A DNA stretch of 64,000 bases from Magallana gigas (GCF_963853765.1 NC_088853.1:20832001-20896000); one strand, 5' to 3'; positions 17,950 to 44,212 are shown, counted from the first letter of the stretch. The notes: a model not told the origin generated them from the letters alone. Translations and numbers: made by a program.

Positions 17950-18082
17950 NNNNNNNNNNNNNNNNNNNNNNNNNNNNNNNNNNNNNNNNNNNNNNNNNNN
18001 NNNNNNNNNNNNNNNNNNNNNNNNNNNNNNNNNNNNNNNNNNNNNNNNNNNNNNNNNNNNNNNNNNNNNNNNNNNNNNNNNN
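17950..18082. other. Assembly gap (133 N)
   Basis: Run of n characters. Confidence 1.
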
Positions 18083-22740: not shown

Positions 22741-24025
22741 AACTGTGATTTTCATCACGGATATTCGCTGAATACCAATTTTCAACGATTTCGTTGTTAA
22801 TGTTTTCCATAAATTTAAATGTTTAAGGGGACATGGTCACGATTTTGATCAAATTCTATTTTTCTTTTTTTATTGTTTACAATGCTTTAGGAATGTATTT
22901 CTAATAATCAAATTAAATTTGAGAGCCTGTCTTGAAGTTTTAAGCAAGATACAGAACTCACAGTTCTTTGTCATGTATAAACAAGGCGCATGCCCTGTTT
23001 TTGTTTACATATGTTCAATTTACAAATAAAAATATCTTTTTTAAGCTGATTTGTCTATCTTGTTATTCGTTTTAAGCATAGATAGATAGTTCCTTACGTT
23101 TAACACATTCATTTTAGGTCTGGAACTGAACTTTTCACTTCAACATTCAAAATGTAAACAAAAGCTTTGTTTACATAGCAAAGAATTGCAAGCTCTGCAA
23201 CTCGCTTATAACTCAACGAATGACACTCAAATATTGGATGCCTATTAAAAATACCTCACTGAAGCTTTCTAAACGTTAAAATCAGAAAAATAATTTTTGA
23301 CCAAAATCGTGACCATGTCCATTTAATGAATAACTAAAAGAATATCTCTACACCTAAATGATGATTTAGTAATCTATAATATTTTACAACATTGAACAGT
23401 ATTATTCCATATTTTAGCTCATCAATTTTATCTTAAGTTATATCTTATCAAAAATGCATAAAATTAAGTAAAGTAACTCACCAACTGAAAATTAAATACA
23501 TGTACTTAAAGGTAAAACATCAGTCCTCTTGACAGACTATGAAGATGTGCAACTTGCCTCTGTCTTGGGTTTTGCCGTGATAATTATTTTTGAATTGAAT
23601 AGCATGCCAAAACCAAGATATAATATGCCTTAACATGCGTACGTATTCACACAAACCAGAAAAACCAGTCTAACACCCACTTTCATATTCACCGATCCAC
23701 CCGCCATTCACAATCACGTTACCACTCGTACTACAACCATACTCTGAACAGATGGATCAATGAACGAATGAAAGAGTAATAGCAATTATAAAATGCAAAC
23801 AAATGAACACTGGAAAATGAAAATATGAGATGTTGAATATAAATGAATATGAAATGAGTTGTTATAAATATTATGATTATTATGTTCAATATTGTTAACT
23901 TATGATAATTTAATATCCTTGGACTTGATAGGGTCATACGCCATGAATTTCCGCGCTATTGAAACTAAATTTGTTTACTGTATCCACGAAAATTTATGCC
24001 AACGAGTATTAATGGAAACACAGTT
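22741..24025. mobile_element. Copy of the 30723 MITE family split by nested insertions
   Basis: The left half (22741-22822, gaataccaatttt...gatttcgttg) and right half (about 23925-24025, ttgatagggtcat...tatccacgaaaatt...aacacagtt) each align to the intact 30723-30933 copy. Confidence 0.7.
22827..23322. mobile_element. TTAA-flanked non-autonomous DNA transposon (Kolobok/piggyBac-type MITE)
   Basis: TTAA at 22823-22826 and 23323-23326. TIR GGGGACATGGTCACGATTTTG vs CAAAATCGTGACCATGTCCAT matches at 19 of 21 positions. Confidence 0.82.
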
Positions 24026-29283: not shown

Positions 29284-30501
29284 ATGTCTCAAATGAGAGA
29301 TGATAATAACACTGATAATAAAGCGCTCGAGAAGTTGACAAACGTGGTCCTGAGTCTAGAAAAGGCCTACTACGATGGTGTTGGCGCTCTGAAGCTAGAA
29401 CACATGTACGGATATTGGGGTCTGCAGTACAATTTCCGATTTGGGTACTTCTTGTCCGCTTTACCTCCCGTTGTAACGATCATTATGTTCGTCATCTTCA
29501 AACGGAGAAAACTTCTAGGGGTGACACAGAAGTTCATTTTATGCATCATGGTTATGGATTTAGTCTACACCACGATCTCGAGCATCCGTGACATCCTGTT
29601 GAGGGCTTTCCAGATGCATTATGGGTTCATGGAATTTCGGGTGTGCTCGGAAATCATCGTCTCTTTTCGTGTACAACTGTTTCTCCACGTAACCTCTATC
29701 TGGCTGAAAACCTTGATGTCGCTACACCAGGCACTATTGATAGGATTCCCGTTCAAAGTAAAACAACATAATCTATCCGCTTACTTTTACACCTTTATTT
29801 TTGTCCACGGGATCTTGTGTGTGTCATTTTTCCTTTTTTTCAGCGCTCCAGTCTTCGAACCTGTTCCTCTGATTCAGGAATTCAGACCAGGCTATGCTCT
29901 CAAAAAGATCCTTGGCTGTAGATATTCTCACTCAAGAGTTGTCGCAGATATCAATATTTCGTTAGTAGGGTTGGTAATAACATATGCTCTTTATTTCTAC
30001 AACCAAGTCCTTCCGTTTACTCTTCATTGCATTATCATCGTTGTCCTCGTTGTCCTTTTGACCAAACAAATTCGGGTTCTTTCGGTTTTTTCTGGAAACA
30101 TCGCTATCGAACGAGTCACATACATATCGTTAATGAAGGTAAACATAGCTCTTGGATTGTCTTTCGTGCTTCAGGAACTTCCGGTGATTATATTCATAAT
30201 GTATCAGTTCCTTGTCAACTCCGATCGCCTAGATAGCGACAAGACTGGTATGCAATATCAAGGCTATGTCACTGTTATTATGTCAATTTCCTTCTGCATT
30301 GGTAAACCCATAGATCTACTAATCTACAGTAGCCTGAGTAAAGCTTTTAAGGAAGAGTTGAAACACCTGTTATGGAGTTTGTGTAAACCCTGCAGGAGAA
30401 ATGTAAAGACTGCAGATAACATTCGTAGTCGGCCCGGTGTCTTCCTTCCAAGAACCACCGAGGAGGTCAAAGGAACTGCTTCAAGTAAAGTGCAGGTGTG
30501 A
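29284..30501 (+). CDS. Class A 7TM GPCR, sex-peptide/MIP/FMRFamide-receptor-like, paralog 1 (405 aa, single coding exon)
   Basis: Seven hydrophobic segments; TM2 MDL; ECL1-TM3 Cys and ECL2 GC; TM3 LHVTSIWL similar to SPR FHTASIWL; TM6 FVLQELP; TM7/H8 KPIDLLIYSSLSKAFK similar to SPR YPINFAIYCGMSRQFR; N-terminal NNT sequon; C-tail cysteines; AATAAA near 30660. Confidence 0.92.
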   Translation: MSQMRDDNNTDNKALEKLTNVVLSLEKAYYDGVGALKLEHMYGYWGLQYNFRFGYFLSALPPVVTIIMFVIFKRRKLLGVTQKFILCIMVMDLVYTTISSIRDILLRAFQMHYGFMEFRVCSEIIVSFRVQLFLHVTSIWLKTLMSLHQALLIGFPFKVKQHNLSAYFYTFIFVHGILCVSFFLFFSAPVFEPVPLIQEFRPGYALKKILGCRYSHSRVVADINISLVGLVITYALYFYNQVLPFTLHCIIIVVLVVLLTKQIRVLSVFSGNIAIERVTYISLMKVNIALGLSFVLQELPVIIFIMYQFLVNSDRLDSDKTGMQYQGYVTVIMSISFCIGKPIDLLIYSSLSKAFKEELKHLLWSLCKPCRRNVKTADNIRSRPGVFLPRTTEEVKGTASSKVQV

Positions 30502-30722
30502 TATAAGGGCACTTTAAACCCGAAACACACGCACACGCGTACGTGCTTTAATGATGAGGAACTTAAAATAATTGTTTTTGCAATCTATATGTCTAGATCT
30601 GATTTACTGTGTCTGTACTGTCTTTGTGTTACGTGTTTGGAAATCACGTGATTCTTATCAATAAAAGTTGGCTCTTATTATACCTTTGTGATCTGTTAAC
30701 CAACATATTGTAGGGCAAATGT

Positions 30723-30933
30723 TACTGTGGTTTCATCAATATTCATTGAATACCAATTTTCGTGGATTTCGTTGTTTAGTTGATCCATGAAATTAAATGT
30801 TCATTGAAGTGCAATTTTTATTAACATTTTGTATTGATAGGGTCATTGGCCACAAATTTACGTATCCTTGAAACTGTGATTTTCACTTTATCCACGAAAA
30901 TTGATGCCCTTGAAAATTAATGAAACCACAGTA
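30723..30933. mobile_element. TA-flanked Tc1/mariner-type MITE between GPCR paralogs 1 and 2
   Basis: TA-CTGTGGTTTCAT ... ATGAAACCACAG-TA; internal TTTTCGTGGA / TCCACGAAAA inverted motif. Confidence 0.85.
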
Positions 30934-31701
30934 TCTAAAGTTATTGGTTCGTGAAAACCGGTCTAATTATTGACCTTCTTCTTTACGAGTGAATTGATAC
31001 TTATGTTTTTAAAATGACAGTATATAAATGTTTCAGGATGAAACACTCTTTGTTTTTAAACAATTCAAATCCTCATAGTGACATTACTAATTGATTTTAT
31101 TATAAAGAATTTGATAGATATTGTAACCAACCAGTCACCCTGATTTTAAAGTCATTAATTTTTTCCTTGACATTCATTTTATCTTATCTCATTATCCATG
31201 TTCAACTGATGAATGATGAATTATTTTTAGGTCAGTGTGATTAACGTTGTATATACAATATGCATACATTTTCACCTGCCACCTCCTAAAGTGGGGCAAC
31301 ATCTATAAAACGAGATTTATATTCATTTATTCACCTTAAAAAATAGTATTTATGATTAATTATAATTTTATACGTATTCTAAACAGTATTCCTATGTTTG
31401 AATGACATGTCAAGATTTTCTTGTCTCTGGTCAAAAGTAAATCAAGTAACTTTCTAAAATTGCCATCAAATATACATAATTGTCGCAAATTAAAAAAAGA
31501 ACCAAACCTAATGGTTTACTTGCAATTGCAAGTTTACGGAACTTACACCCCACCAAAAAACTGTAAACTTGTTATGGTTGAATAAGGTTGAATAAAACAC
31601 AAACATGCGTTATCAATAACAATGTATGTTTATTTGACTAATCTTTCTCTTGTTTTTGCAGAATTTAAAAAAAATCAACAAACTCAAACTTCTGTTTAAC
31701 G

Positions 31702-32856
31702 ATGTCTGAATCGCAAAGCATAAACAACACCGATGAAAAGGCGATTTCGGCTTTAAACAACGTTTATACGAGCTTGCAAAAAGCCCTGCACGATTCCGCA
31801 CGCGTTCTCAAGCTAGTAGATCTCTACGGAAGCTGGGGTTTGACCTACTCTTTTCAAGTTGGATTCCCTTTGTACATCTTGCCCTTCATAGCTACGATTC
31901 TCATGTTCGTCATCTTCAAACGACGGAAGCTCCTGGGAGTGACACAGAAATTCATTCTGTCCATCATGGTAATGGATCTATGCTACACGTCCACTTCTAG
32001 CATCCGAGACACCTTACTGAGACTGTTCCAGATGCATTATGGGTTCATGGAATACCGCGTCTGTGCGGAAATCATCGTTTCTTTTCGCGTACAAATGTTG
32101 TTTCATGCCACCTCTGTGTGGCTTAAAACCATGATGTCTCTTCATCAAGTGCTTATTGTAGGCTTTCCATTAAGAGTTAAACAGCACAACCTGTCTGCTT
32201 ACTTTTACTCTTTTATTCTCGTTCACATCGCCCTATGTTTGGCATATCTTGTGTTCCTTGCAACTCCAGTTTTTGAACCAGTGCCATTGATCCAGGAGTT
32301 TAGATCGGGATATCCTCTTCACAAAATCATCGGTTGCCAGTTTTCTCATTCGAGGTTTTTCCCAGATATCAACGATTCTCTGATTGGAACGGCGATAACT
32401 TTAATCATTTTTCTGTACAACCAAATCATTCCGTTTATTTTTCATTTTATTACCATTATGATGTTAGTATTCCTCTTGACAAAGCACATTCGAACACTCT
32501 CGTTACTGACTAATAACATCGCCGTGGAACGCGTCAAATACGTAGTGTTGATGAAGGTCAACATCGCTATGGGGGTCTCCTTTGTTCTGCAGGAACTCCC
32601 TGTCATTTTGTTTTTCGCGTACCAGATTTTATATAGCGGGAAAAATGTGGACAACTTGGCAATTTATGAACAATATCAAGGCTTTGCTACCTCAGTCATG
32701 TCAATTTCGTTTTGCATTGGAAAACCAATAGACCTTCTGATTTATTGCAGTCTCAGCAGATCATTCAAAGAAGAGTTAAAATATATCATAAGCCTTTGTT
32801 GTAGGCCGGGCAGGAAAAAGGTGAATAGTGAAAAAGGCAATGGTGCACTCAACTGA
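31702..32856 (+). CDS. Class A 7TM GPCR, SPR/MIP-receptor-like, paralog 2 (384 aa, single coding exon)
   Basis: Intact ORF colinear with paralog 1 along its length, with shared blocks FQMHYGFME, PVFEPVPLIQEFR and MSISFCIGKPIDLLIY. Confidence 0.92.
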   Translation: MSESQSINNTDEKAISALNNVYTSLQKALHDSARVLKLVDLYGSWGLTYSFQVGFPLYILPFIATILMFVIFKRRKLLGVTQKFILSIMVMDLCYTSTSSIRDTLLRLFQMHYGFMEYRVCAEIIVSFRVQMLFHATSVWLKTMMSLHQVLIVGFPLRVKQHNLSAYFYSFILVHIALCLAYLVFLATPVFEPVPLIQEFRSGYPLHKIIGCQFSHSRFFPDINDSLIGTAITLIIFLYNQIIPFIFHFITIMMLVFLLTKHIRTLSLLTNNIAVERVKYVVLMKVNIAMGVSFVLQELPVILFFAYQILYSGKNVDNLAIYEQYQGFATSVMSISFCIGKPIDLLIYCSLSRSFKEELKYIISLCCRPGRKKVNSEKGNGALN

Positions 32857-33602
32857 AAATATCAATTCCAAAACTCATGAAAAGCTTAAAAAAGATTAGA
32901 ATCGTTTTGTTTTTAAGATATAGAAATTTGAAAATATCTTATTTTTTGCTATCAAAGGGATTGTACATATGATTTTGATGCATACGAATCTTTAAGTTTA
33001 GGACTTAACTATGTTTAAGGAGTTTTAGTGCGTTAAAAAGTTAAACCATGTTTCGCTTTTAAAAAATAAAGGTATGATAAAGCCTGCAAATTGAAGATTT
33101 GTGAAATTGTGTTAACTAAATTAAATATTTAATAAAGCACTTAGATTTACTGAGAAAAGTATATTACCGCAATTCTCTTAGCTACTGCACTTATTGACTC
33201 TGCAAACAGAAAAAAATAAAAGGTCGTTAAATCTGTTTTACTTTAAGTCCATGCTCAATACATTAAATGTCTTTTTAATCATCAATAAATTAAGATGTAT
33301 AATTATTTGTCCACAAACGTAACATTTGGTATAATAAGCCATACAGATAGGCAAAATGCCTTTCCGAAAATTAAAGGAATTCATTGTTTTTTCTTATCTG
33401 ACAGACATTTTTTTAATGCTAAAAAATGCCAGTAATTTCAAATTAATATACGTTTCATGAGATTTAAGGAATCTATTTTTAATATTGTGATGAAGGCAAT
33501 TTGCTTATCTCTTACTTGTCTTTCTACGAAAAGGAAAGATCAAAATTTACGTCTATTTTTATCATCACTAATTAAATTATTATTCTGTCTGTATACATTT
33601 CC

Positions 33603-33639
<37 letters not shown>

Positions 33640-33850
33640 ATTCTGATCACATTTTGTCCGTCGTCCGTCTGTCTGTCCGTCTGTAAACTTTTTACATTTT
33701 GAACTTCTTCTCTAAAACCGCTTATCCAATGTCAACCAAATTTGGCACAAAGCATCCTTATGGGAGGACGAATATAAATTGCAGAAATGAAAGTCCGATC
33801 TGTTTTTAAAGCGGAGAAAACCTTGAAACTGTAGAAAAAGAGGGGTGCAT

Positions 33851-33882
<32 letters not shown>

Positions 33883-34010
33883 TCCAATTCAACGTAGTTT
33901 AGCATAAATTATCCTTATGGGAAGGAAAATATAAATTGCAAAAATTGAGGACTAATTCTGTTTCAAATCTGAGTTATTACGAAAATAATAATAAAGGAAA
34001 GGCGTGTTTC
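33603..34010. mobile_element. HINE/Helentron left end and start of internal repeats (opposite orientation to the 46.9-kb copy)
   Basis: tttttagctcacctgagctgaaagctcaagtgagct is almost exactly the reverse complement of 48730-48764. It is followed by a (GTCC/GTCT)n tract and two ~156-bp units (ccttatggga at about 33757 and 33913). Confidence 0.82.
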
Positions 34011-36521
34011 AATCATCAGTTTAATAGCTTCGGGTTCGGCATCCGGTAAAATGGGTAGGCAAGACTTGGCCTGGGCAAAAAAAAAAAGATTGGCAGTTGT
34101 TAATCTGCCAATCTCATTAAAATTTCAGGATATTTGATGGACCAGTGTATTCGTGTTCGCTGTAAATATTGCTGCAAAATAATGCGTATTTGAAATTGAC
34201 GATTGCCGATTTGCCCCGGCTTTTATTTTGCCACGGCCCGGGTTTGCATACCCATTTTACCAAGACTCGTATACTTCTAAAACGAGGTTCTTTGTTTAAA
34301 GCAGCCATGACATTGTACGAAAAAGGGTCGATCTGACTATGATGAATTTGCTTGTTGTGCAACAGTTTGCGTATGAAGGGGAATTTTTGAAACATGCAAA
34401 ATATATTGGTGCCGATTTTGTGAAGTAAATTGAGGCTAAATATTTCAATGCGTTGACAGTTTTCACACATGACGTTGGTGTTAGCTTGTTCTGATTTTCG
34501 TTTCGTTTTCATTATTTATCAATATGCTTTGTAACCTGGGAACTATCGTCTGTATTTCGTGATGTTTACGTATCAAATCAAACAGAGACTTCGGTAAATC
34601 AAACAGTTAACTGTTTACCTGCGCAAATTATGCAAAATCTGATGTATCAAAAAAGTACTGAAATACAATTCATTCTATCGGTAATTCGGCATTATCTTTT
34701 GCGTAATGGTAGATGAATGCAATAGGTTTTGTTGAGATGCTCGGCATTTTCTCGAGTTTATTCAGTTTAAATAAAGTTTGATATCGCTGACGGAAATATG
34801 TAGGTATATATATGTATATATATATATGATTCATTTCGAAAAAATAAATTGTGTTCTTTATTTGTTATAGTGCATGTTTCTTGCGTTTAATTGTTTACAA
34901 TTTCTATTTACTAACCATATTTGAGTATTAAGCTTCGAATTATAAGGAAGATACAGAGATTTGCTCACAATTCTATGTTTGTACACAGATCTTAAAAACT
35001 AAAGATTAAAAAAGTAAAAAATTTGTCAATTTTTATTAAGAAAATTTTCAAAGTCTGTTCTTCCAGAAACCAACTTTAACAACTTATTGTATTGTAAACT
35101 TAACCTTTTTTCTTCATTATTACGGGCCGCCAGAAGGCGGTCCGTTATTTGATATACATTTAGATATTGTAACTGCGTTTCTGCGGGATAGTTTTTTTTA
35201 TAGAATTAATATTATGCATATTTTTTAATGAATTAAAAGTAAATTTGCATGTAGACATATGTTATTCCTTTAAAAAATATTACACATTTTTTGTTTAACT
35301 TGTAAATGTATAGTAGGTCATAGACTTTCGTGTTAGGTGCGTTTTTATCGAAACTACAAACTATTCGGAGTTTTTCATTCTTTTCAAAACAATGTATCGG
35401 GATCGGTATACGGGACATACTAAAAGACCTCAAATACTAAAGACCTGAATGACATGAAATTTTATATTAATTATATATTTGAATCATGAAATGACATCCA
35501 TATCAATTATTTACGCAAAAAGATGAAAGACCCAAATATTTGAGATGACCTGATTTTTTAAAAATACTTTTGAGAACCCCATGCAATTAAATAAGCATGA
35601 TTATCTTCATAAACTGAAGTGTAGATATTCTACAATTCAATACAATGCAACAAAAAAAAATCAAAATAGTTTGAAATACATAATCTCCAAGAGAATAATG
35701 ATGACCACAGAGCTGAACTTTGATTTAGAATAATGTACAAATCAATGTGTTCTCCTTTACTTCATACTATGGCAATGATCAAACAATTACCGTTTGAAAT
35801 GCTTACAGTAAAGAACTCGATTCTTAATAATAATAATAGTAAAATGTGAAACTTCAAAACGTGTTGCTGAAAATATATTAAAATTTACCTTAAAAATTAG
35901 TAGAACCAACTCATTATTTTCTTCTTTGTGGTGTGTTTTTCTGTAAACAACCAATGATGATTCATACACATTTATGTTTTTTGTGGCCCATTTGACGCTT
36001 GCTCCTACTGTACATGTGATACTTGACTGTGTTTGTGTACATTTGTATAAACTGATTTTGAACCTCAAATACCAGTGAACTGGTCTTGAGTGAATAAAAG
36101 AATTGAAAATCTTAGGCCATTCTTTTTTTTTCCAGTTAAAGGGCATTGGCAACGTTCCTGGTTTCTTGACAATATTTTTCATAAATTCTTAAATGAATTT
36201 ATATGTGTCTATATAGACAACAACAGACACTAGAGACCCCTCTTTCAATCCTTGTTAAAAAATATTTCCAAAAATATTAATTTCGCATTCAACATTGATT
36301 TCAATGTAATTAAAGGAACAAATCGCAATAATTAATATTTGAAAGGAGCAATTTTCTGATGAGTGAGATATGTGATTATAAACTAAATGATACATATTAT
36401 TGAAAATCGATTTTATATGATATCCTACTGATAATGAAATATAGGGCGAATATTTTCAGAAAAGTGTGAACCTCAATTTGCTCTTTCCTATTCAAGAGTT
36501 ACCGTCCTTGATTTTGTCACC

Positions 36522-36654
36522 GTACTGTCATGTTGTAAATTTTGAATTTACCGGGTGGCAGTAAATACAAAATTTACAACATGACAAAGTTGTCATGTTG
36601 TAAATTTTGTATTTACTGCCACCCGGTAAATCAAAATTTACAACATGACAGTAC
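36522..36654. repeat. Foldback element with nested palindromes, copy 2
   Basis: Near-perfect 133-bp palindrome bounded by GTAC; each arm is itself an imperfect palindrome. Confidence 0.85.
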
Positions 36655-38398
36655 ACACACACAGTAAATAATAAGATCATTAACACTTATCTATACCGGT
36701 ACTTATCTTTGAGGTATCAAGAAAGAAGACGGTTCTAATATTTTTGAATTCCTAGTTAGACTTTAGGCGTGCTCTAAGAGAGCAAAAGTAACTCATTATT
36801 TATTGTCAGAAATGTCTCTTTTACAAATTAATAATTAAAATGTGAGTCATTGATAATTCTGACTTAGCAATGAGGTCAGTTTAATTTAGAAATGATCTCA
36901 TTGTCCACAAAATAAAGCAGCTATGAATAGTTTATGTGTATATAATTTCATGCATATACATGTATATGTGTGTATTGTACTATAATATCAAAACAATAGG
37001 TATGAAAATAAATGAATTTAGACTCTCGGTCTACTGTCTTTTGTTAAAGAGTATCGGAGTTAATCAATGTTTGGTTCACTTCTTTTTTTCTATTTTGCTC
37101 GTCAATATCTTCTGACCCCCCCCCCCCCCCCCCCAACCTTCCTCGGTCGTCTGTCAATAGTAGACAAGATAGATAGATAAGAAAACGAAAGGTCATTTAA
37201 AATCTCTCTCACAATTTTTGTCATATAGAAATTTGCTCCTCTCTTTTCTGAGGCCCATGTAACCTGCTTGTTGACGCAGAGCGATATATGAATATCGCTT
37301 CATCTATATACATGACATATTTTGTTTACCTCAGAAACACTGCTTTTTTACCATAATATTCAAAAAGATCTCATATAACGGGAGATAATTACTCCCAGTT
37401 GGAAAACAATTCAAGAGGGGTAATTCTAATTCATTGTATAAAATAGAAAATGCAGATGCGGATTTTTTTTTAAATCCGGAGCACTTCGTTGCCAATGCCC
37501 TTAAATGCTGAATAGGAAATACCAAGTTAAAAATCTTAAGCTGAATGTAATAAACTCATGTGAACAAAATATGACTCAAACCTAGGCGAACTGTGAGCTC
37601 TGTATCTTGCTTATAATTCTACGATTGACGCTGGAATTTTGGTTGAACATTAGAAATTCTCTATGAATTAGAGTATGTTAAATACTTGTACAAACAAAAT
37701 AAAAGAATGATATTCTGTACATACCTTCACTCTGGGGCCCCCTCTTTATACAATAAATAATGTGGAATCTAAATCAATTTTGATAGTTTTTCAGAAACGA
37801 GTAAATAAAAACGACATCTTTAAAACAGTTTCCATAGTTCTGACACATTTCTGTTGCGGGGATAAAGTAATTATCGCTATTCCTAAGAAAATATCACAGC
37901 GGAAAATTATCCTGGTTTGTGTGCGAGGTAAATAACAGACATTTAATTATTATAGAGAAGAAAAATTAAATTGTTAAATGTTTTTAATTTGAGGAACTGA
38001 GCTTTTTGAGGTACATTTTTCTTCTTCACATCAATACATGTAGGATTTTTAAAATAAAAACAATAACTATTATATATTTTTTTTAAATACAATAATTAGT
38101 AAGTTATAAGTGTAAAATTCGAATACTTTACAATTTTTATTTTTAAGGCGTCGAGCTAATGCTCGGCAGTCTTCTAGCGATCGTCTGGATTGGCAATAGT
38201 CCAAAAAATCATAAGTTCTTTAAATTGTTAAACGTATTGCAAGATTTTTATTCCATTTATTCAACTATATTGTGTACAAAAAACCCGATTTTGCCTCCCT
38301 GGTTATTGACAACTCATTGCATAAGTATAAATTTGCTTGATCAAGAAATGGCGGATGAATACAATAAGGTGAAAAAATTCAATAAATGTTTTTTTAAG

Positions 38399-38500
38399 TT
38401 TATCGCTTACATTTTAAGGGGAGATCGTGCCCGATAGAAATAAAATTTGTAATTTTATTTGTTATCGGGCACGGTCTCCAATATAAATGTAAGCGATAAA
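38399..38500. repeat. ~100-bp hairpin/foldback element
   Basis: tttatcgcttacattt...ggagatcgtgcccgata-gaaataaaatt-tgt-aattttattt-gt-tatcgggcacggtctcc...aaatgtaagcgataaa. Confidence 0.8.
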
Positions 38501-39063
38501 CATATCTAGTGATTTTGTTGCAATAAATAAACTGGGTAATGCAGTCGGTTTGGTCAAGCATTTAAGATAGCTCGTGTTGTGGATTTGTTTGTAAACAACC
38601 ATAGGTAATCTTGTTTCAAACGGGAATTTAAATATAAATAGAAGTATGTTTTATTATTATAATTAGGGGCACACTGTTGATGTATTCAAATTATGAACCT
38701 GTGAAAATTGTTCAAAGACTGTTTAAAGCAGAAAGAAAATAATTTATTTTTGAACTTTGAAATTTCTTTTTTGATTCTTGTAACCATGATGAGTTATTGT
38801 ATTATAAACGCATCACTACCTATTTTATAAGGAAATATACCGATTTTTTGTTTTTAAAGCAACACAAAATTGGCCATAATTCAGTTACTTTTTTTTATTC
38901 AAATATAATTTTATATACAACAATTAGTAAAAATTCTAATTATTGCAATTGATATCTTAATTTCTATATAAAAGAACATGTCAGCTTGACGCCTTTGTGG
39001 CCGTTCCGGCCTTTGATTTTTTTATTCTACCGAGGGACCATATGGCACAATATCTTTTGAACG

Positions 39064-39109
39064 CCCATTGTTGCTCAAGTGAGCGATGTGGCCCCATGGG
39101 CCTCTTGTT
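39064..39109. mobile_element. HINE/Helentron terminal segment, same orientation as the 33603 end
   Basis: cccattgttgctcaagtgagcgatgtggccccatgggcctcttgtt closely matches the reverse complement of the 46902 terminus. Confidence 0.75.
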
Positions 39110-39612
39110 AATTAAGTTATACACGAGATAAAAGACTAGTTGCTTAAGAGAGAATCTTTATCTTTCAATTCAAGTTTAATTTGTGAAAAAAATCATACTA
39201 AATTCTTTATCAAATAATAGTACCACAATTTTAGGATACCATGCTCGTCATTTGACCAAGCATTCATATAATATGCTTTCCAAAAACTTAAAAAAAAAGA
39301 TCATGTCAATGAGTCAACATTTTGGACTCGTATTTTACTGGTTCTAAAAATCGGAAGAAATATTTACAATAGAAATATATCACGCACATTTTCCTAGGGG
39401 TAGCTATTTCAGTTTTATTTTCACCCTATGTCCCAGATATCTACTGACACACCAATTATAATGCATTTTTGTTGATTTCTGTGTGGCTTTGAAAATGTGA
39501 TTTAATCTACAAAGGAAACACATAGACGATATAATTTACTTTTCAACTATTTTCCTAATCCTTTTCATAGTAGATAAAAACCACATTCGAGACAATTCTT
39601 GAATTGGAAAAC

Positions 39613-39615
<3 letters not shown>

Positions 39616-39667
<52 letters not shown>
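39616..39667. repeat. (CT)n microsatellite
   Basis: Direct reading. Confidence 0.97.
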
Positions 39668-39671
<4 letters not shown>

Positions 39672-42077
39672 TTTTAAAAAATGCCACGTTTTTACACTTT
39701 ATTATGAAAATGAAAATATCGCTGTTGCGCCATATGATTGCATTACTATTCGTAAGTACTTGTGTAGGACACTAAAAAAGAAACAACGTTATTAATATGG
39801 CCATGACCTTTAGCCTTGTAGGTAACCTCAATAGAGTTACAAAACGCCCTTTAGGTTATTGATAGGACTATTAGAGACCTCTTGATAAGAGCAATTCTGT
39901 TAATGTACTTGATTTTGAAAAAAGAAGTATATTAAAAAAATCAAATTTCACGGCTATTTAATCTAGGACAAACAAGGTACATACTCGCATCACAAAACCT
40001 TGATGATTTTTTAAAATCAAAATTTGCACACTGTTGTGTAAAAATGTAAATTTATAAAATCTAACATTTCTGTCATTTATAAATGTAAATGCCATCTTGA
40101 TAACATTTAGGCCATCAGTACAACATTTTGCTGCATAATATGTTTTACAAATTATGTGCACGTAAAATAAAATTTGAATTTTTATTTCTTGCAAGGTTTT
40201 TTTTTATTGAAATGTGGGTAAAGTGTTATACAAACTTGAAGAAAATGCTTTTGATAGTTCAAAAGTTCGACCTTTTAATCCAGACAGTCTTGATTTTTTT
40301 TTGGTGCAGTGTTTCTTCGTAAAGATAACATGAATTACTCAGTTCTGTCTGAAAACAAGAGTCTGTCACTTTAATTCAAAGACAGAATTTCATAAAAAGG
40401 TTTAACAGTGACAGCCATTTATAAGAAATGAAAAGAAATAAGAATCGTTACGCAAAAAAACCCCCATAAAATGGACGATATGTAAAACATCAGAGACGAC
40501 AGAAAATCCCTAGTCTTTGGTCTGCATACTTTACTTTTCCTTAGTCTGCATTGAAAGACTAAACAGGTGAGTGCTATTTGGAAACATTTTTAAATACAGA
40601 ATACGTCTATATGATATCAAGTAATTAATATTTTTGAAAACAATTAGCCTCGGTTTAGAGATGTTTTTTTCTTTCTCTTTAGGGAGGCAGCGCTTTTTTT
40701 CATTTTTAGGTATTTTAAAAACGTAAGTCTATATTTATTTGCATTTGCATTCAAACCAGTTTATTCCTAAATCTCAAGGTATATTACTTGGATAATTTCG
40801 AAGTTAGAATTTTGGACTTTTCTTTTCATAACATGCAAAATGAAATTGATTGCTCATGTATAAAATCATTGTTTATTGATTGTTGAAACTCTGTATCAAA
40901 TTTAGATATTATCACATAAAATAACATTTACCTTCAGGAATACTTAACGGAAATATTAACAAAAACTGGCAAACCACATTCGAAATAAAAATAATTTGTT
41001 GTAGTTGGTTTCAGGAACAAAACTGTCTCAATGCTATTATTCGTTAATTATCCTTTTAAGAACATATTTTACATTCGATTAATAAATTTATGTTTGTTAA
41101 ATACGAATGTTTATGAATGCTTAGGTTGACCAACTTTTTAATTTATCATCCTTTTCTATTCATAAAGAGAGGCCATTATTAACTACCAACGGTTAAGAAA
41201 CAACATCAATTTAAGAGAAATGAATAGCCATGACCGATTATTATGCTATTTAATCTCTTATATGAAAGAAAAAGAGCGTTGTAAAATGATAAAAGGAAAG
41301 GCGCAACTTTTGAGGAGTTATTGTATTGAATTTTACGTCATTATATAATAGTTTATAGCTCAAAATATCATTCAAAATTTAGATATAATTAATTTTACTT
41401 TTACTCTATTTTGATGTAATGTCAAGGGAAGTAACTCACAGTGACAACATATACTATCTTCTAAACAAATTGATTTGATAGTGGATTTGTTAACCACCTA
41501 GCCTCTAAGAGATCATGCATTGCATTACTTCCAAAATGATATTGAAATGATATTGGGGCGCATGACTGACGTTTTTCATACTAATTGTTAGACCATAATG
41601 ACCTAATTGTCAAAGGACATTTCCGGGTTTTTTCCCCGATTACGACAAAAAGCACAAGGCGGATGTGACCGGTCATCAGAGAATGCTCACTCCTCTTAGG
41701 CAGCTGATCCTGCCTCTATTTTTTTTAGCAGTCTGGTTTGAATTGTATTTCGTTTTAAGGATTTTTGTGATGGTTGACAGTTTGTAATTTTTCATTGATT
41801 AGATCATTGCGAGGTTCTTTATAACAAAGACCTTTCTCAAAAGTAAAACATTAGATACTATAAAAAGTGTATAAGTAAAGTAGTGAAAGTTTAATTGTAA
41901 AGGTTACCACCAATAGTTCGTAATATGGATGACTGATGTTAGCCATTGCAAGTCGGAGGAGATTTTGCTGGAAAATTTATCTTAGGTTTAAATCGATCGA
42001 CAAAATTATGAAATTTCACCAAAACTATTACATCAAAGATTGATCTCCCCTACCTGTCATTGCTATCTTCATAAGAA

Positions 42078-42299
42078 TACTGTGGAATCATTTAAATTCG
42101 TGGGGACCAATTTTCGTGGATTGTGCATGTTGTGCTTATTCTTGAGGATGTTAATACGTTGATGCGTCGGTTTTCAGTTTTAATAAGATAACTAACCTTT
42201 TAAAATTTGTTTTTGTTTTCGAGTGTGTAAATTCGAGGGGCAACCACTAATACCACGAAAGTTGATCCATCCACAACGAATTCTAATGATCCCGTAGTA
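42078..42299. mobile_element. Related TA-flanked MITE upstream of GPCR paralog 3
   Basis: TACTGTGGAATCATT ... AATGATCCCGTAGTA, with the internal CCAATTTTCGTGGATT shared with the 30723 copy. Confidence 0.72.
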
Positions 42300-43018
42300 A
42301 CTGACAATTGATTCGTTTAATATGTCGATTCATGAACGGGCTGGTGGACTTGTTTGGGTTTCAATGTTTGATTGGAAAATGAGAGAGCAAAATGTAATCC
42401 TTCTGAAAAGAGTAAAATTTGCTAGAGTTGTAAAACAAGTAAAGGACACACGAGACGTTCCTCAATTTTATTTAATTTTCCTTGGTGATTTGTTCCTTAT
42501 TTATTAACATTTAAACCTGTTAATTTCCAAATTCAGGGTACATTACTAGGCTCTTTTCGGAGCTCGAATATTTCGAATTTGTCTTTAAATAGCATGTAAT
42601 GGCATGCAAAATGCATTTGAATGCTGATAAATAAAGCCATACTATACATTTTCAATGGGGCACTAAATATCTTAATAAAAAAAGAGTCATATAACAAAAA
42701 TTAATTATAAAATTACGAAGTGGAAATCTTTACATTGTGGAGATAGGGAAAAAAAAAGAAGAAAAGTCTAACAAACAGGTTTTGAATCAGTTCAGAACTT
42801 GATCTTAGATTTTGTAGATTTCTTTCTTGTTAGTTTCTATATAGATTACAATCGAATTTCTTCTGAAATTGAGGAGAGATTGCTTGATGGATGGAAATAT
42901 TCTAACATGATGATAATCTAAGTACACAATTTGTAAACTATATATCAGTATTTTTTTTTGTATTCCAGAGTTTGGATCCAGAATTTTTTTTTTTTTAATC
43001 TGAAACTCAAGGTTCGAA

Positions 43019-44212
43019 ATGCAAGGTGTAAAAAGCACTGATAAAGGACTTGCAAAAATGAATGAACTTTTTGTTAGATTGAAGAAGTCCGAATACGATG
43101 CTTCTCGCGTACTCAAGCTAGAAAACATTTATGGAAGCTGGGGTATAGAATATGCCTTTCAATATGGATTCTTTTTAAACTTGTTACCTCCTGTCGTAAC
43201 GATTTTAATGTTCGTCATCTTTAAGCGGAAGAAACTCGTAGGGGTGACACAGAAATTCATTTTGTCCATCATGGTCATTGATCTATTTTACACGTCCACA
43301 TCAAGTATTCGAGACACCTTATTGAGGATGTTCCAGATGCATTATGGGTTCATGGAATACCGCGTCTGTTCAGAAATCATCATCTCCTTTCGTGTACAAA
43401 TGTTCTTTCATGCAACCTCAGTATGGCTAAAATCTTTGATGCTGTTACATCAAGTGTTACTGGTAGGGTTTCCGTTAAAAGTAAAGCAACACAATCTGTC
43501 CAGATATTTTTACGTTTTTTGTCTTGTTCACGTGATCCTGTGTATAATATTTTTAATGTTTCTTACCACTCCTGTTTTTGAACCAGTGCCCTTGATTCAG
43601 GAATTTAGACCTGGTTACCCTCTTCGAAAAATCATTGGGTGTCGATATTCTCATTCAAAAATATTAAAAAATGCTTCTCAATTCGGAATTGCGATGTCCA
43701 CCGTCATGTTAGTCTACAACCAAATCATCCCGTTTGCTTTTCATCTGATTACCATTGTGGTCCTCGTAATCTTCTTGACCAGGCACATTCGAACCCTCAC
43801 GCTCCTGACTAATAACATCGCCGTTGAACGGGTCAAATACATAGTGTTGATGAAGGTAAACATCGCTATGGGGGTCTCCTTTGTTCTGCAGGAAATGCCT
43901 TTGATAATTTCTCTAGTGTCACAGATTGGAATCACTCAAAATACCAAGGAATCGAATATCGAGGCGTCAGGTACACAGTTTCAAGGCTATACGACCGTTC
44001 TTATGTCAATTTCGTTCTGCATTGGAAAACCAATTGACCTTTTGATCTATTGCAGCCTTAGCAAAGCGTTTAAGGAAGAGTTGAAATACCTGCTGATGTT
44101 TTTTTGTAGGCTTTGCAGGAGAAAGATGAGTATTGAGGAAAGGCATTGTGGACAACAGAAAATACCAATTCCAACATCCATGAAAAGAGTTCTAGGAAGA
44201 GAAAAGTATTGA
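43019..44212 (+). CDS. Class A 7TM GPCR, SPR/MIP-receptor-like, paralog 3 (397 aa, single coding exon)
   Basis: Intact ORF colinear with paralogs 1 and 2 and carrying the same conserved blocks. Confidence 0.92.
   Translation: MQGVKSTDKGLAKMNELFVRLKKSEYDASRVLKLENIYGSWGIEYAFQYGFFLNLLPPVVTILMFVIFKRKKLVGVTQKFILSIMVIDLFYTSTSSIRDTLLRMFQMHYGFMEYRVCSEIIISFRVQMFFHATSVWLKSLMLLHQVLLVGFPLKVKQHNLSRYFYVFCLVHVILCIIFLMFLTTPVFEPVPLIQEFRPGYPLRKIIGCRYSHSKILKNASQFGIAMSTVMLVYNQIIPFAFHLITIVVLVIFLTRHIRTLTLLTNNIAVERVKYIVLMKVNIAMGVSFVLQEMPLIISLVSQIGITQNTKESNIEASGTQFQGYTTVLMSISFCIGKPIDLLIYCSLSKAFKEELKYLLMFFCRLCRRKMSIEERHCGQQKIPIPTSMKRVLGREKY

Follow-up and report, generated by a model that had tools for sequence, protein, structure and literature searches.

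The window (the whole 64,000-nt stretch of oyster DNA that was analyzed) carries three seven-transmembrane receptor genes whose products, judged from their sequences, appear to constitute an undescribed class A GPCR subfamily that is highly derived. Our favored reading, to which we assign a probability of roughly 0.6, is that they belong to a working, derived class A branch that employs a buried salt-bridge switch, probably still engages an intracellular transducer, and consists of lineage-specific orphan receptors. An initial annotation of this DNA had spoken of an "undescribed system"; the adjective stands, but the genes represent a subfamily of a known receptor class, not a system.

All three genes are intronless, lie on the plus strand, and contain no internal stop codons: ORF1 (29284..30501; 405 aa, of the HQA / GKPIDLLIY type), ORF2 (31702..32856; 384 aa, the protein used for modeling), and ORF3 (43019..44212; 397 aa). 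Their pairwise identity is 59–66%, and tblastn found no additional copies or fragments of them in the 64,000-nt window. ORF1 and ORF3 each have a match without stops in the organism's own genome. Reading frames of 384–405 codons at 33% GC, with homologs at E-values down to 1e-247, are far beyond chance. TM3 of the three ORFs reads SIWLKTLMSLHQA, SVWLKTMMSLHQV and SVWLKSLMLLHQV, following the pattern WLK[TS]xMxLHQ[AV], and TM7 is IGKPIDLLIY, with GKPIDLLIY the same in all three. The ORF and alignment evidence thus bears out the three intact frames, with their TM3 and TM7 motifs, that had been annotated initially.

Ballesteros–Weinstein positions were checked in two ways: by a family-profile HMM alignment to human SSTR5 and by a MAFFT alignment to SPR-like proteins. 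In the former, H-Q/R-V aligned with D-R-Y, the TM3 Ser with S3.39, the TM3 Lys with L3.43, D92 with D2.50, QELP with CWLP, and D..LIY with NPVLY. The latter, which was ungapped and included ten SPR-like outgroup proteins, placed the two Lys residues opposite T3.43 and Y/F7.46, HQ opposite QR, and Asp opposite N7.49. Both alignments agree with the residue calls made earlier (Q for R3.50, H at 3.49, K for both T3.43 and Y7.46, and D for N7.49, D2.50 and S3.39 being retained). HMMER placed a one-residue insertion at K7.46 relative to SSTR5; this position is exact with respect to the SPR-like proteins and could be a bulge with respect to vertebrate receptors.

The core that emerges in ORF1–3 comprises D2.50, S3.39, K3.43, H3.49, Q3.50, E6.48, K7.46, P7.47, D7.49, and Y7.53, all encoded on the plus strand. 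D2.50 is D92 of ORF2, the last residue of IMVMD in TM2 (ORF2, 31963..31977; ORF1, 29545–29559; ORF3, 43268–43282). The TM3 stretch S138..V150 of ORF2 (32113..32151; equivalents at 29695–29733 in ORF1 and 43418–43456 in ORF3) supplies S3.39, W3.41, K3.43, H3.49, Q3.50, and V3.51; an E/DRY motif with R3.50 is absent from ORF1–3, all three having H-Q-V/A. Also absent from them in canonical form are CWxP and NPxxY. In TM6, LQELP (Q6.47, E6.48, P6.50; ORF2, 32587..32601; ORF1, 30169–30183; ORF3, 43886–43900) takes the place of CWxP with P6.50 kept, and in TM7, GKPIDLLIY (G7.45, K7.46, P7.47, D7.49, Y7.53; ORF2, 32719..32745; ORF1, 30301–30327; ORF3, 44024–44050) has D7.49 and L7.50, with P7.47 and Y7.53 kept. 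Throughout the family, charged residues (K3.43, K7.46, and Asp/Glu7.49) thereby occupy the sites that in class A receptors usually make up the hydrophobic lock and the Na+/water pocket, where Leu is the rule at 3.43 (Thr in SPR-like proteins), Ser, Tyr, or Phe at 7.46, and Asn at 7.49. The initial annotation overlooked E6.48, which is common to the SPR-like relatives and alters the charge count. The extracellular Cys of TM3 (C121 of ORF2, in RVCAE, 32056..32070, plus strand) and C212 of ECL2 (32326–32340, plus strand) show no variation across the family and fit the class A disulfide.

Across the 54 family rows, K7.46 does not change once (54/54), nor do S3.39 and Q6.47 (54/54 each); E6.48, which replaces the toggle-switch Trp, occurs in 51/54, K3.43 in 41/54, and an acidic residue at 7.49 in 42/54. 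K3.43 together with acidic 7.49 is ancestral to the family, and D2.50, S3.39, and E6.48 are an inheritance from SPR-like ancestors. Losses of K3.43 are always paired with the loss of exactly one Asp: the 2.50/3.43/7.49 triad then reads AND, NTD, or DNN as opposed to DKD, and its net charge is preserved across these states. This covariation amounts to only two to three independent events and is not significant, and the lineage of L004, P0014, and P0024 (N2.50, K3.43, N7.49) is an exception to it. K3.43 and K7.46 are presumably buried, given the known geometry of their positions and the conserved TM3 stripe 3.32/3.36/3.39/3.43/3.46; the computed conservation moment is weak.

The organism's own genome holds about 25 intact and 2 broken family loci. 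Because three different queries recovered these ~27 loci identically, in tandem clusters on C1, C4, C9, C3, and C8, we regard the family as a closed set; expansions are also present in other samples. In a library of 1.8 billion proteins, full-length members scored E ≤ 1e-59 and formed only ~10 clusters at 50% identity, the next full-length matches appearing only at ~1e-17. Ten of the latter were inspected, and all were of the QRY/N7.49 type; the four scanned with Pfam matched Srw and 7tm_1, and one was named "sex peptide receptor-like".

R3.50 is present in 21/54 rows, namely in the basal clade and in the C4/C9/C3 clade. The 18 own-genome paralogs on C4, C9, C3, and C8 that keep it (HRV/HRS) also have K3.43, K7.46, and D7.49. 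Its loss is confined to the chromosome-1 clade (HQ/HH), which holds ORF1–3, and to some lineages from other samples; Q or H is found at this position in P0037 and P0039 as well, and the P0035 group has Arg at 3.49. Because the Lys core coexists with R3.50 in 18 paralogs, the Lys network and the loss of Arg have to be counted as distinct events, and the chromosome-1 clade replaced R3.50 by Gln/His after the Lys core arose. The initial annotation had counted the Arg loss as part of a rewired core; the Lys/Asp core holds up, but it is separable from that loss. It had also proposed a selected, lineage-specific subfamily, for which the ~27 loci and a dN/dS of 0.2–0.45 argue, but the agreement among the three paralogs reflects shared ancestry, not independent events.

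The AF2 model of the ORF2 product (pLDDT 80, pTM 0.76) has seven TM helices and helix 8, along with a confident N-terminal helix at residues 9–34. Foldseek matched this model with probability 1.00 to CXCR3, OX2R, AT1R, APJ, opioid, and NPY receptors, and with TM-scores (by target) of 0.6–0.69 to many class A peptide receptors. The product is thus predicted to adopt a class A seven-helix fold of the peptide-receptor type. Pfam 7tm_1 (PF00001) gave no match at E ≤ 1 for ORF1, ORF2, or ORF3; a precomputed PF00001 match is on record for two family members that are more distant. Srw (PF10324) was the only Pfam model to match the set, and the matches are borderline: against the curated cutoff of 22.2 bits, ORF2 scored 22.8 and ORF3 15.9, and ORF1 did not match. 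Like the nematode Srw chemoreceptors, to which it shows no sign of orthology, the window family is peptide-receptor-derived and arranged in tandem arrays, and its genes are intronless as well. In a protein-language-model search, the top-ranked clusters were nematode Srw / class A ones.

Among named proteins outside the family, the closest is a "sex peptide receptor-like" protein of Pecten maximus (XP_033731018.1; P0077), in keeping with the SPR/MIP-receptor-like relation that had been suggested for these genes. Such SPR-like proteins are the nearest outside relatives (profile E ~1e-15). With bivalve SPR-like/MIP-R proteins and Drosophila SPR, the family shares H3.36-x-x-S3.39-x-W3.41, D2.50, E6.48-x-P6.50, Pro at 7.47 rather than 7.50, Y7.53, and the helix-8 F-R/K. 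However, SPR-like proteins have T3.43, Q-R-Y/F at 3.49–3.51, Tyr/Phe at 7.46, mostly N7.49, and strong Srw and 7tm_1 matches, whereas the window family has K3.43, H3.49, Q/H/R3.50, Q6.47, K7.46, and D/E/N7.49. Orthology to SPR/MIP (AST-B) receptors was considered and rejected: in a tree of 54 family rows and 10 SPR-like outgroup rows (which may not include deorphanized MIP receptors), the family formed a distinct clade outside the outgroup with 100% SH-aLRT and a branch length of 1.42, and in place of the SPR signature (T3.43, Q-R-Y/F, Y/F7.46-P7.47-x-N7.49), ORF1–3 have K3.43, H-Q-V, and K7.46-P7.47-I-D7.49. Additional lineage-specific MIP-R subtypes are documented in bivalves (PMC8514136), and the family branch probably arose in bivalves from an SPR/MIP-receptor / FMRFamide-receptor / Srw-like group.

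Ortholog dN/dS, which the initial annotation had singled out as a check, was 0.20–0.34 (NG86) and 0.29–0.45 (YN00), not near 1; for the ORF3 orthologs P0003 and P0005 it was 0.29–0.44. Synonymous codon turnover surrounds the fixed K, D, S, G, P, and Y residues. The least variable regions are ICL2 and ECL1, the entropy of ECL1 within the clade being 0.08; the first ECL2 strand is also highly conserved. Variation within the clade falls in ECL3, the N-terminus, TM4, and TM5, and the N-terminal helix is second only to the C-terminus in variability. Such strong conservation of ECL1 and the first half of ECL2 is unusual for fast-diversifying chemoreceptors. On the cytoplasmic face, P34.50-L/F34.51 of ICL2, Y7.53, the helix-8 F-K/R-x-E-L, and a Cys cluster past helix 8 are conserved; the C-terminal tails are not, and the ORF2 tail past helix 8 has a single Ser. 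A dN/dS of 0.2–0.45 and the conservation of ICL2, Y7.53, and helix 8 lead us to take ORF1–3 to be working, tandemly duplicated genes. Signs of expression are sparse: low-depth contigs cover the ORFs in three libraries, only one of them declared RNA; small contigs from run X1 lie over 29306–30169 (ORF1), X3 contigs span 31661–33087 (ORF2), and contigs from RNA library X14 cover 31822–32088 (ORF2). A 1% sample of one polyA RNA run contained no reads for the ORFs.

We propose that a buried salt-bridge network would replace both the Na+/water network and the hydrophobic lock between 3.43 and 6.40/6.41, serving as a switch that links the ligand pocket with the cytoplasmic face. The partner of K7.46 would be D2.50, E6.48, or both, and that of K3.43 would be D7.49, D2.50, or both. 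The ligand, probably a peptide to judge from the modeled fold and ECL2 β-hairpin, would upon binding rearrange these Lys–acid pairs, and TM7 and TM6 would move. Because the switch would carry the conformational coupling, R3.50 could be dispensable and hence lost more than once. Given the conserved cytoplasmic surface, the receptors have most likely kept their engagement with an intracellular transducer, although its efficiency or selectivity would have changed.

Among 286 class A GPCRs, 96% have a hydrophobic residue at 3.43 (bioRxiv 10.1101/663153). This position forms the hydrophobic lock and, on activation, gains contacts with 7.49 and 7.53 (PMC6954041). In A2AR, L3.43A/R is activating; N7.49K and L2.46R lock D2.50 and abolish signaling (PMC6954041). 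The Arg introduced in S3.39R and in N7.49R is salt-bridged to D2.50 (PMC7055379). These engineered analogues disagree: a basic residue at 3.43 activates, and one at 7.49 or 3.39 acts as an inactive lock. S3.39R (M2), N7.49R (M4), N7.49K, L2.46R, L3.43A/R (A2AR), and L3.43Q (CysLTR2) resemble the family in that a residue beside D2.50 or at 3.43 is altered, a basic residue falling in the same layer as K7.46 and K3.43. However, the engineered positions differ (7.49 or 3.39 rather than 7.46), and these engineered and disease variants are single changes in canonical receptors, whereas the Lys pair, E6.48, and D7.49 of the family are natural, ancient, and co-conserved.

Could the odd microswitches simply be a product of relaxed constraint on recent tandem duplicates that are decaying or non-functional? 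The very low expression signal, the two broken loci, and a dN/dS above that of typical conserved neuropeptide receptors would agree with this, but ORF1–3 and their orthologs/alleles in other samples are intact, dN/dS is well under 1, and the odd residues are the most conserved ones (K7.46, S3.39, and Q6.47), with synonymous turnover around them; decay is largely refuted already, and we give it hardly any credence. A less remote, though still unlikely, explanation is that ORF1–3 are atypical receptors (decoy, scavenger, or arrestin-only) that bind ligand and, lacking R3.50, do not activate heterotrimeric G proteins, perhaps damping the signaling of R3.50-bearing paralogs. Gln replaces R3.50 in all three ORFs, and Gln/His does so throughout the chromosome-1 clade. 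C5aR2 (DLC) and ACKR1 likewise have a disrupted DRY Arg and do not couple to G proteins. C5aR2 (C5L2) and the atypical chemokine receptors resemble ORF1–3 in that R3.50 is lost or altered while the rest of the class A scaffold is intact and under selection, but they are not sequence relatives, they have ordinary Na+-pocket and NPxxY residues, and their non-coupling has been demonstrated experimentally. Purifying selection, which shows that some function is retained, also suits this explanation. Taste T2Rs and many nematode chemoreceptors, however, signal through G proteins without the DRY Arg. Moreover, no intracellular segment is better conserved than ICL2 with its P34.50 and L/F34.51, both Y7.53 and helix 8 remain intact, and the unconserved tails, with the single Ser in ORF2, argue weakly against a phospho-dependent arrestin code. 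A Lys beside D2.50 does recall the inactive locks N7.49K/R and S3.39R (PMC6954041, PMC7055379), but the same network accompanies an intact R3.50 in 18 paralogs and is hence no decoy mark in itself.

We consider it still more doubtful that the receptors are constitutively active, being ligand-independent or self-activated. K3.43 would then open the hydrophobic lock and bridge D7.49, imitating the active-state 3.43–7.49 contact, and the N-terminal helix and a YGxWG / ECL1 / ECL2 lid would fill the pocket. The activating effects of L3.43A/R (A2AR) and L3.43Q (CysLTR2, TSHR) and the contacts that 3.43 gains with 7.49 and 7.53 upon activation (PMC6954041; 10.1101/663153) are compatible with this, as are the unusual conservation of ECL1 and the first ECL2 strand and the confidently modeled helix. 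However, K7.46 beside D2.50 points the opposite way, to an inactive lock; a strongly constitutive output from about 25 paralogs would come at a cost; and that helix is the most variable part bar the C-terminus.

The salt-bridge-switched, transducer-engaging branch is our favored reading. Class A lineage-specific expansions (LSEs) are common in Ostreida (Nath et al. 2025, PMC11886862). Like the window family, those of Lophotrochozoa occur in tandem clusters, show little orthology across taxa, and have expanded in Ostreida. Apart from DRY and NPxxY, the survey reports no conserved motifs specific to a group (PMC11886862), whereas the window family is without canonical DRY/NPxxY and is defined by its conserved charged core. 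The family would fall within the Lophotrochozoa class A LSE category, and by analogy the ORF1–3 products would be lineage-specific orphan receptors of the kind read as candidate chemoreceptors.

Three tandem plus-strand genes occupy the window, each an uninterrupted reading frame: ORF1 (29284-30501, 405 aa), ORF2 (31702-32856, 384 aa) and ORF3 (43019-44212, 397 aa). Because the GC content across the window is only 30-39%, a chance origin of such long frames is excluded; their best homologs extend down to E=1e-247. The predicted proteins are 59-66% identical in pairwise comparisons, and all three read S-[IV]-W-L-K-[TS]-x-M-x-L-H-Q-[AV] in TM3 and G-K-P-I-D-L-L-I-Y in TM7. The initial annotation's account of three intact frames with shared TM3 and TM7 motifs was thus confirmed. 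A tblastn search over the full 64 kb found no copy or fragment beyond these three. A run of N at 17950-18082 is either an assembly gap or a masked stretch.

Are these genes maintained? Against the nearest relatives that are not identical to them (presumed orthologs, sharing 79-88% of amino acids), the dN/dS ratio was 0.20-0.34 (NG86) and 0.29-0.45 (YN00). The overall range of 0.20-0.45 is well under the neutral-type value near 1 that the annotation had named as refuting its proposal. Among the paralogs, synonymous codon differences surround fixed K, D, S, G, P and Y residues. In the nine-member clade that includes the window genes, the least variable elements are ECL1, ICL2, TM2 and TM3, and variation is greatest in ECL3, at both termini and in TM4 and TM5. 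Elements that contact the transducer are kept: P34.50-L/F34.51 after TM3, Y7.53, the helix-8 motif F-K/R-x-E-L and a Cys cluster after helix 8. On the dN/dS values and the conservation pattern, we rejected a pseudogene reading of the three ORFs.

The assignment of these proteins to a receptor class depends more on fold than on sequence profiles. The Pfam Srw 7TM model scored 22.8 bits for ORF2 (cutoff 22.2) and 15.9 for ORF3, with no match for ORF1, and Pfam 7tm_1 matched none of the three. A sequence search of solved structures gave marginal matches only (SSTR5, E=0.0055); that match served residue mapping alone, not family assignment. The AFDB clusters yielded only remote matches (E>=8.5e-9) of generic class A, Srw or FMRFamide-receptor type, and the ESM Atlas offered nothing more specific than clusters of the same types. 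An AlphaFold2 model of ORF2, built on the family alignment (n=27 sequences), had a pLDDT of 80 and a pTM of 0.76; besides the seven TM helices and helix 8, it has an N-terminal helix at residues 9-34 and a beta-hairpin in ECL2. In Foldseek, the model matched class A receptors for peptides and chemokines, e.g., CXCR3, OX2R, AT1R, APJ, opioid and NPY4, at a probability of 1.00. From these structural matches, combined with sequence matches that are borderline or generic, we infer a class A fold carried by a sequence unusually distant from the class A consensus. The family has the fold, the disulfide and D2.50 of class A; it departs from the class at the DRY, CWxP and NPxxY microswitches and in its response to the Pfam model. 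Membership tests for SPR/MIP-receptor orthology placed it outside that group. Since 7tm_1 is nearly blind to the family, repertoire surveys that rely on this profile may miss it.

Two extracellular segments of ORF2 also drew our attention. Residues 9-46 (window 31726-31839) form the confidently modeled N-terminal helix followed by a near-invariant Y-G-x-W-G atop TM1, and ECL1 (residues 109-117, window 32026-32052; M-H-Y-G-F-M-E-Y) is very strongly conserved. Together, these segments could act as a fixed extracellular lid or a self-ligand.

The core residues were numbered using two independent alignments: the family profile against human SSTR5 (HMMER), and a MAFFT alignment with an outgroup of ten SPR-like proteins. 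In the former, using ORF2 numbering, D92 corresponds to D2.50 and S138 to S3.39, K142 falls on L3.43, H148-Q/R149-V150 on D-R-Y, Q-E-L-P on C-W-L-P (making E298 position 6.48), and D344..Y348 on N7.49..Y7.53. The latter was gap-free over TM2, the TM3 motif (S3.39 to ICL2), TM6 and TM7, and aligned the family's K with T3.43, its H-Q with Q-R (3.49-3.50) and, in TM7, its K with Tyr/Phe7.46, its P with P7.47 and its D with N7.49. Both alignments agree with the assignment previously made by eye. K341 is a one-residue insertion relative to SSTR5 in the HMMER alignment; the label “7.46” is exact with respect to SPR-like receptors and may denote a bulge with respect to vertebrate receptors. An opsin-like reading of the TM7 lysine was ruled out, as it lies at 7.46 rather than 7.43 and other opsin features are absent. 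A feature that had been overlooked is the Glu replacing the Trp toggle at 6.48; because all ten outgroup proteins carry E6.48, it is inherited.

How large is the family? Three different queries of the oyster's own genome (564 Mb, 29 contigs) converged on one closed set of loci, arranged in tandem clusters: 25 intact or nearly intact intronless loci, one frameshifted locus and one fragment. Chromosome C1 harbors the three window genes, two loci at 17.77 Mb and two at 5.73 Mb, along with the frameshifted locus at 12.37 Mb and the fragment at 17.74 Mb; the remaining loci are on C4 (ten), C9 (two), C3 (five) and C8 (one). The frameshifted locus (L008/L026, G000:C1:12366858-12367921) is interrupted in this assembly by one frameshift, after “...FLVFLIT”, and a protein from another sample (P0016) reads through the site uninterrupted; either a null allele is segregating or the assembly is wrong at this point. 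The ten paralogs on C4 lie within ~260 kb (G000:C4:48288276-48550245) and several are 89-99% identical, a sign that the R3.50-bearing branch was duplicated very recently, in tandem or by segments.

Beyond this genome, a profile search run exhaustively over 1.8 billion representatives retrieved only 209 proteins at E<=1e-3. Some ten full-length clusters (50% identity) were found at E<=1e-59, followed by a gap to ~1e-17, where ordinary Srw or 7tm_1-positive receptors start; the sole named proteins in that region are a hypothetical protein of Pinctada imbricata and a “sex peptide receptor-like” protein of Pecten maximus. All family members from outside this genome came from Logan, ENA or JGI records without labels. 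Several have no near-identical counterpart here, and one JGI group is an expansion of its own with at least seven paralogs. Thus, the family is present in other species.

A maximum-likelihood tree of 64 rows (54 family, 10 outgroup), rooted on the SPR-like outgroup, recovered the family as a clade with 100% support on a long branch. The outgroup has D2.50, S3.39, T3.43, Q-R-Y/F and E6.48; its TM7 has Y/F7.46 (one Cys), P7.47 in 6/10 and N7.49 in 7/10. K7.46 is present, unchanged, in all 54 family rows, across which Q6.47 and S3.39 are also invariant; E6.48 occurs in 51/54, K3.43 in 41/54 and an acidic residue at 7.49 in 42/54. R3.50 is distributed differently. The basal C8-type clade and every C4, C9 and C3 gene keep it, within H-R-V or H-R-S (18 genes in this genome; 21/54 rows). 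Gln or His stands at 3.50 throughout a 30-row clade that contains every chromosome-1 gene, the window trio included. The Arg is also replaced in two proteins from other samples, P0037 (HQV, nested within the Arg-bearing clade) and P0039 (T-H-T), and the P0035 group has an Arg at 3.49. This distribution separates two things that the initial annotation had joined in a single rewired core. The Lys/Asp core it described is real and, by the tree, ancestral and family-wide; the loss of the Arg is later, clade-specific and probably recurrent.

Five states of the 2.50/3.43/7.49 triad occur inside the Arg-less clade: DKD, AND, NTD, DNN and NKN. Loss of K3.43 is always paired with loss of exactly one Asp, such that the net charge of the triad is kept; the NKN lineage is the exception. 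This pattern fits a pairing of K3.43 with an Asp, although the two or three events, which provide only two independent contrasts, are too few for statistics.

What might such a core do? In canonical class A receptors, the Na+ pocket is built from positions 2.50, 3.39, 7.45 and 7.49, and a hydrophobic lock from 3.43, 6.40 and 6.41; upon activation, 3.43 acquires contacts with 7.49 and 7.53 (PMC6954041). Position 3.43 is hydrophobic in 96% of 286 class A receptors (10.1101/663153). Laboratory or disease substitutions there, namely L3.43A/R in A2AR and L3.43Q in CysLTR2 and TSHR, are constitutively activating (PMC6954041; 10.1101/663153), whereas N7.49K, L2.46R, S3.39R and N7.49R form a salt bridge to D2.50 that locks receptors inactive (PMC6954041; PMC7055379). 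Since these precedents are opposed, we assign no on or off bias to the resting state. The family places two natural lysines at these same layers, facing three carboxylates (D2.50, E6.48 and D7.49). Residue identity, position and conservation are observed; the mechanism is drawn from the literature. A conservation moment computed for helix facing was weak and is no substitute for Lys-to-carboxylate distances. The most economical reading of the charged core would be a buried ionic network that acts as the conformational switch in place of Na+/water and the hydrophobic lock. With such a network in place, the constraint on R3.50 may have weakened, which would account for its repeated loss. The conserved cytoplasmic face argues that some transducer is still engaged, and a purely arrestin-based role is weakly disfavored because the C-tails are poor and non-conserved, with one Ser in ORF2.

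A bolder extension of this ionic-network reading is, in our estimation, improbable. Here, D2.50/K3.43/E6.48/K7.46/D7.49 together with H3.36, H3.49 and H/Q3.50 would make up a conserved, buried titratable network that is in itself what is new in function, a switch lacking the Na+ site, the Trp toggle, the NPxxY Asn and the DRY Arg. It might respond directly to protons or ionic strength (pH, salinity), in place of or besides a diffusible ligand. Both variables are relevant to an intertidal oyster. Were this so, the repeated loss of R3.50 would mark a family-wide, Arg-independent engagement of the transducer.

Evidence for transcription was sought in assembled contigs from three libraries of different studies. 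Run X1 covers ORF1, and runs X3 and X14 cover ORF2; only X14 is a declared RNA library. Contig depth over the ORFs is 2-16, and intergenic DNA has no contig coverage save for one contig 3' of ORF2 (33154-33323, X1). This restriction to the ORFs points weakly to transcripts, which fit it better than does DNA carry-over. Sampling ~1% of the reads of a polyA RNA run (X21) yielded none on the ORFs and hits only on a repeat, a sample too shallow to indicate absence. The repeat, an element of ~212 bp with terminal inverted repeats, sits between ORF1 and ORF2 (30723-30934) and has partial copies at 22742-22823, 23925-24024 and 42077-42121. Its depth in RNA-library contigs and polyA raw reads is very high, its flanks are many and varied, and it resembles an abundant MITE-like element. 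One X1 contig (depth 3.6) omits 86 nt with GT..AG ends inside ORF1 (29758-29843); this omission would break the frame, and its probable cause is a rare splicing error or an artefact of assembly. Two Logan contigs (L029 and L030), 99.8% identical to the ORF2 locus, diverge from the window at 32910 into a common tail of 24 nt not found in the window, and a contig of another run continues colinearly past that point to 33087. The break represents a structural variant or a chimeric contig end. As L029 and L030 are otherwise colinear with the genome and their tail is not poly(A), their ends were discarded as RNA evidence.

In bivalves, Ostreida included, it is well documented that class A GPCRs have expanded in tandem within single lineages, and such expansions are read as candidate chemoreceptors; a survey of lophotrochozoan expansions found no group-specific conserved motifs besides DRY and NPxxY (PMC11886862). 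Additional lineage-specific MIP-receptor subtypes are known from bivalves (PMC8514136). Our search of open-access literature text found no receptor group described with K3.43/K7.46/D7.49 or with HQ/HH for DRY. The family is a real, selected subfamily of a known receptor class, so far undescribed in that text. The initial annotation's interpretation is partly upheld: what it had put forward as an undescribed system is such a subfamily and not a new system. Orphan expansions of this kind are numerous in invertebrates, and this is one of them.

Class A activation is thought to pass along a near-universal chain made up of the Na+ pocket, the hydrophobic lock at 3.43/6.40/6.41, NPxxY and the DRY Arg. 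When laboratory or disease mutations place basic residues at these layers, receptors end up locked off or permanently on. The family is apparently a natural, long-standing case, with two lysines and two extra acidic residues at the same layers. Its charged-core positions rank among the most conserved of the proteins, and it was in this setting that the DRY Arg disappeared on more than one occasion. Matched paralogs that retain R3.50 or lack it occur side by side in one genome, a natural experiment on the microswitches of class A. Should the receptors signal, they would reveal to what extent the canonical chain tolerates rebuilding and would offer natural engineering templates; should they not, they would be decoy-type class A receptors in a mollusc.
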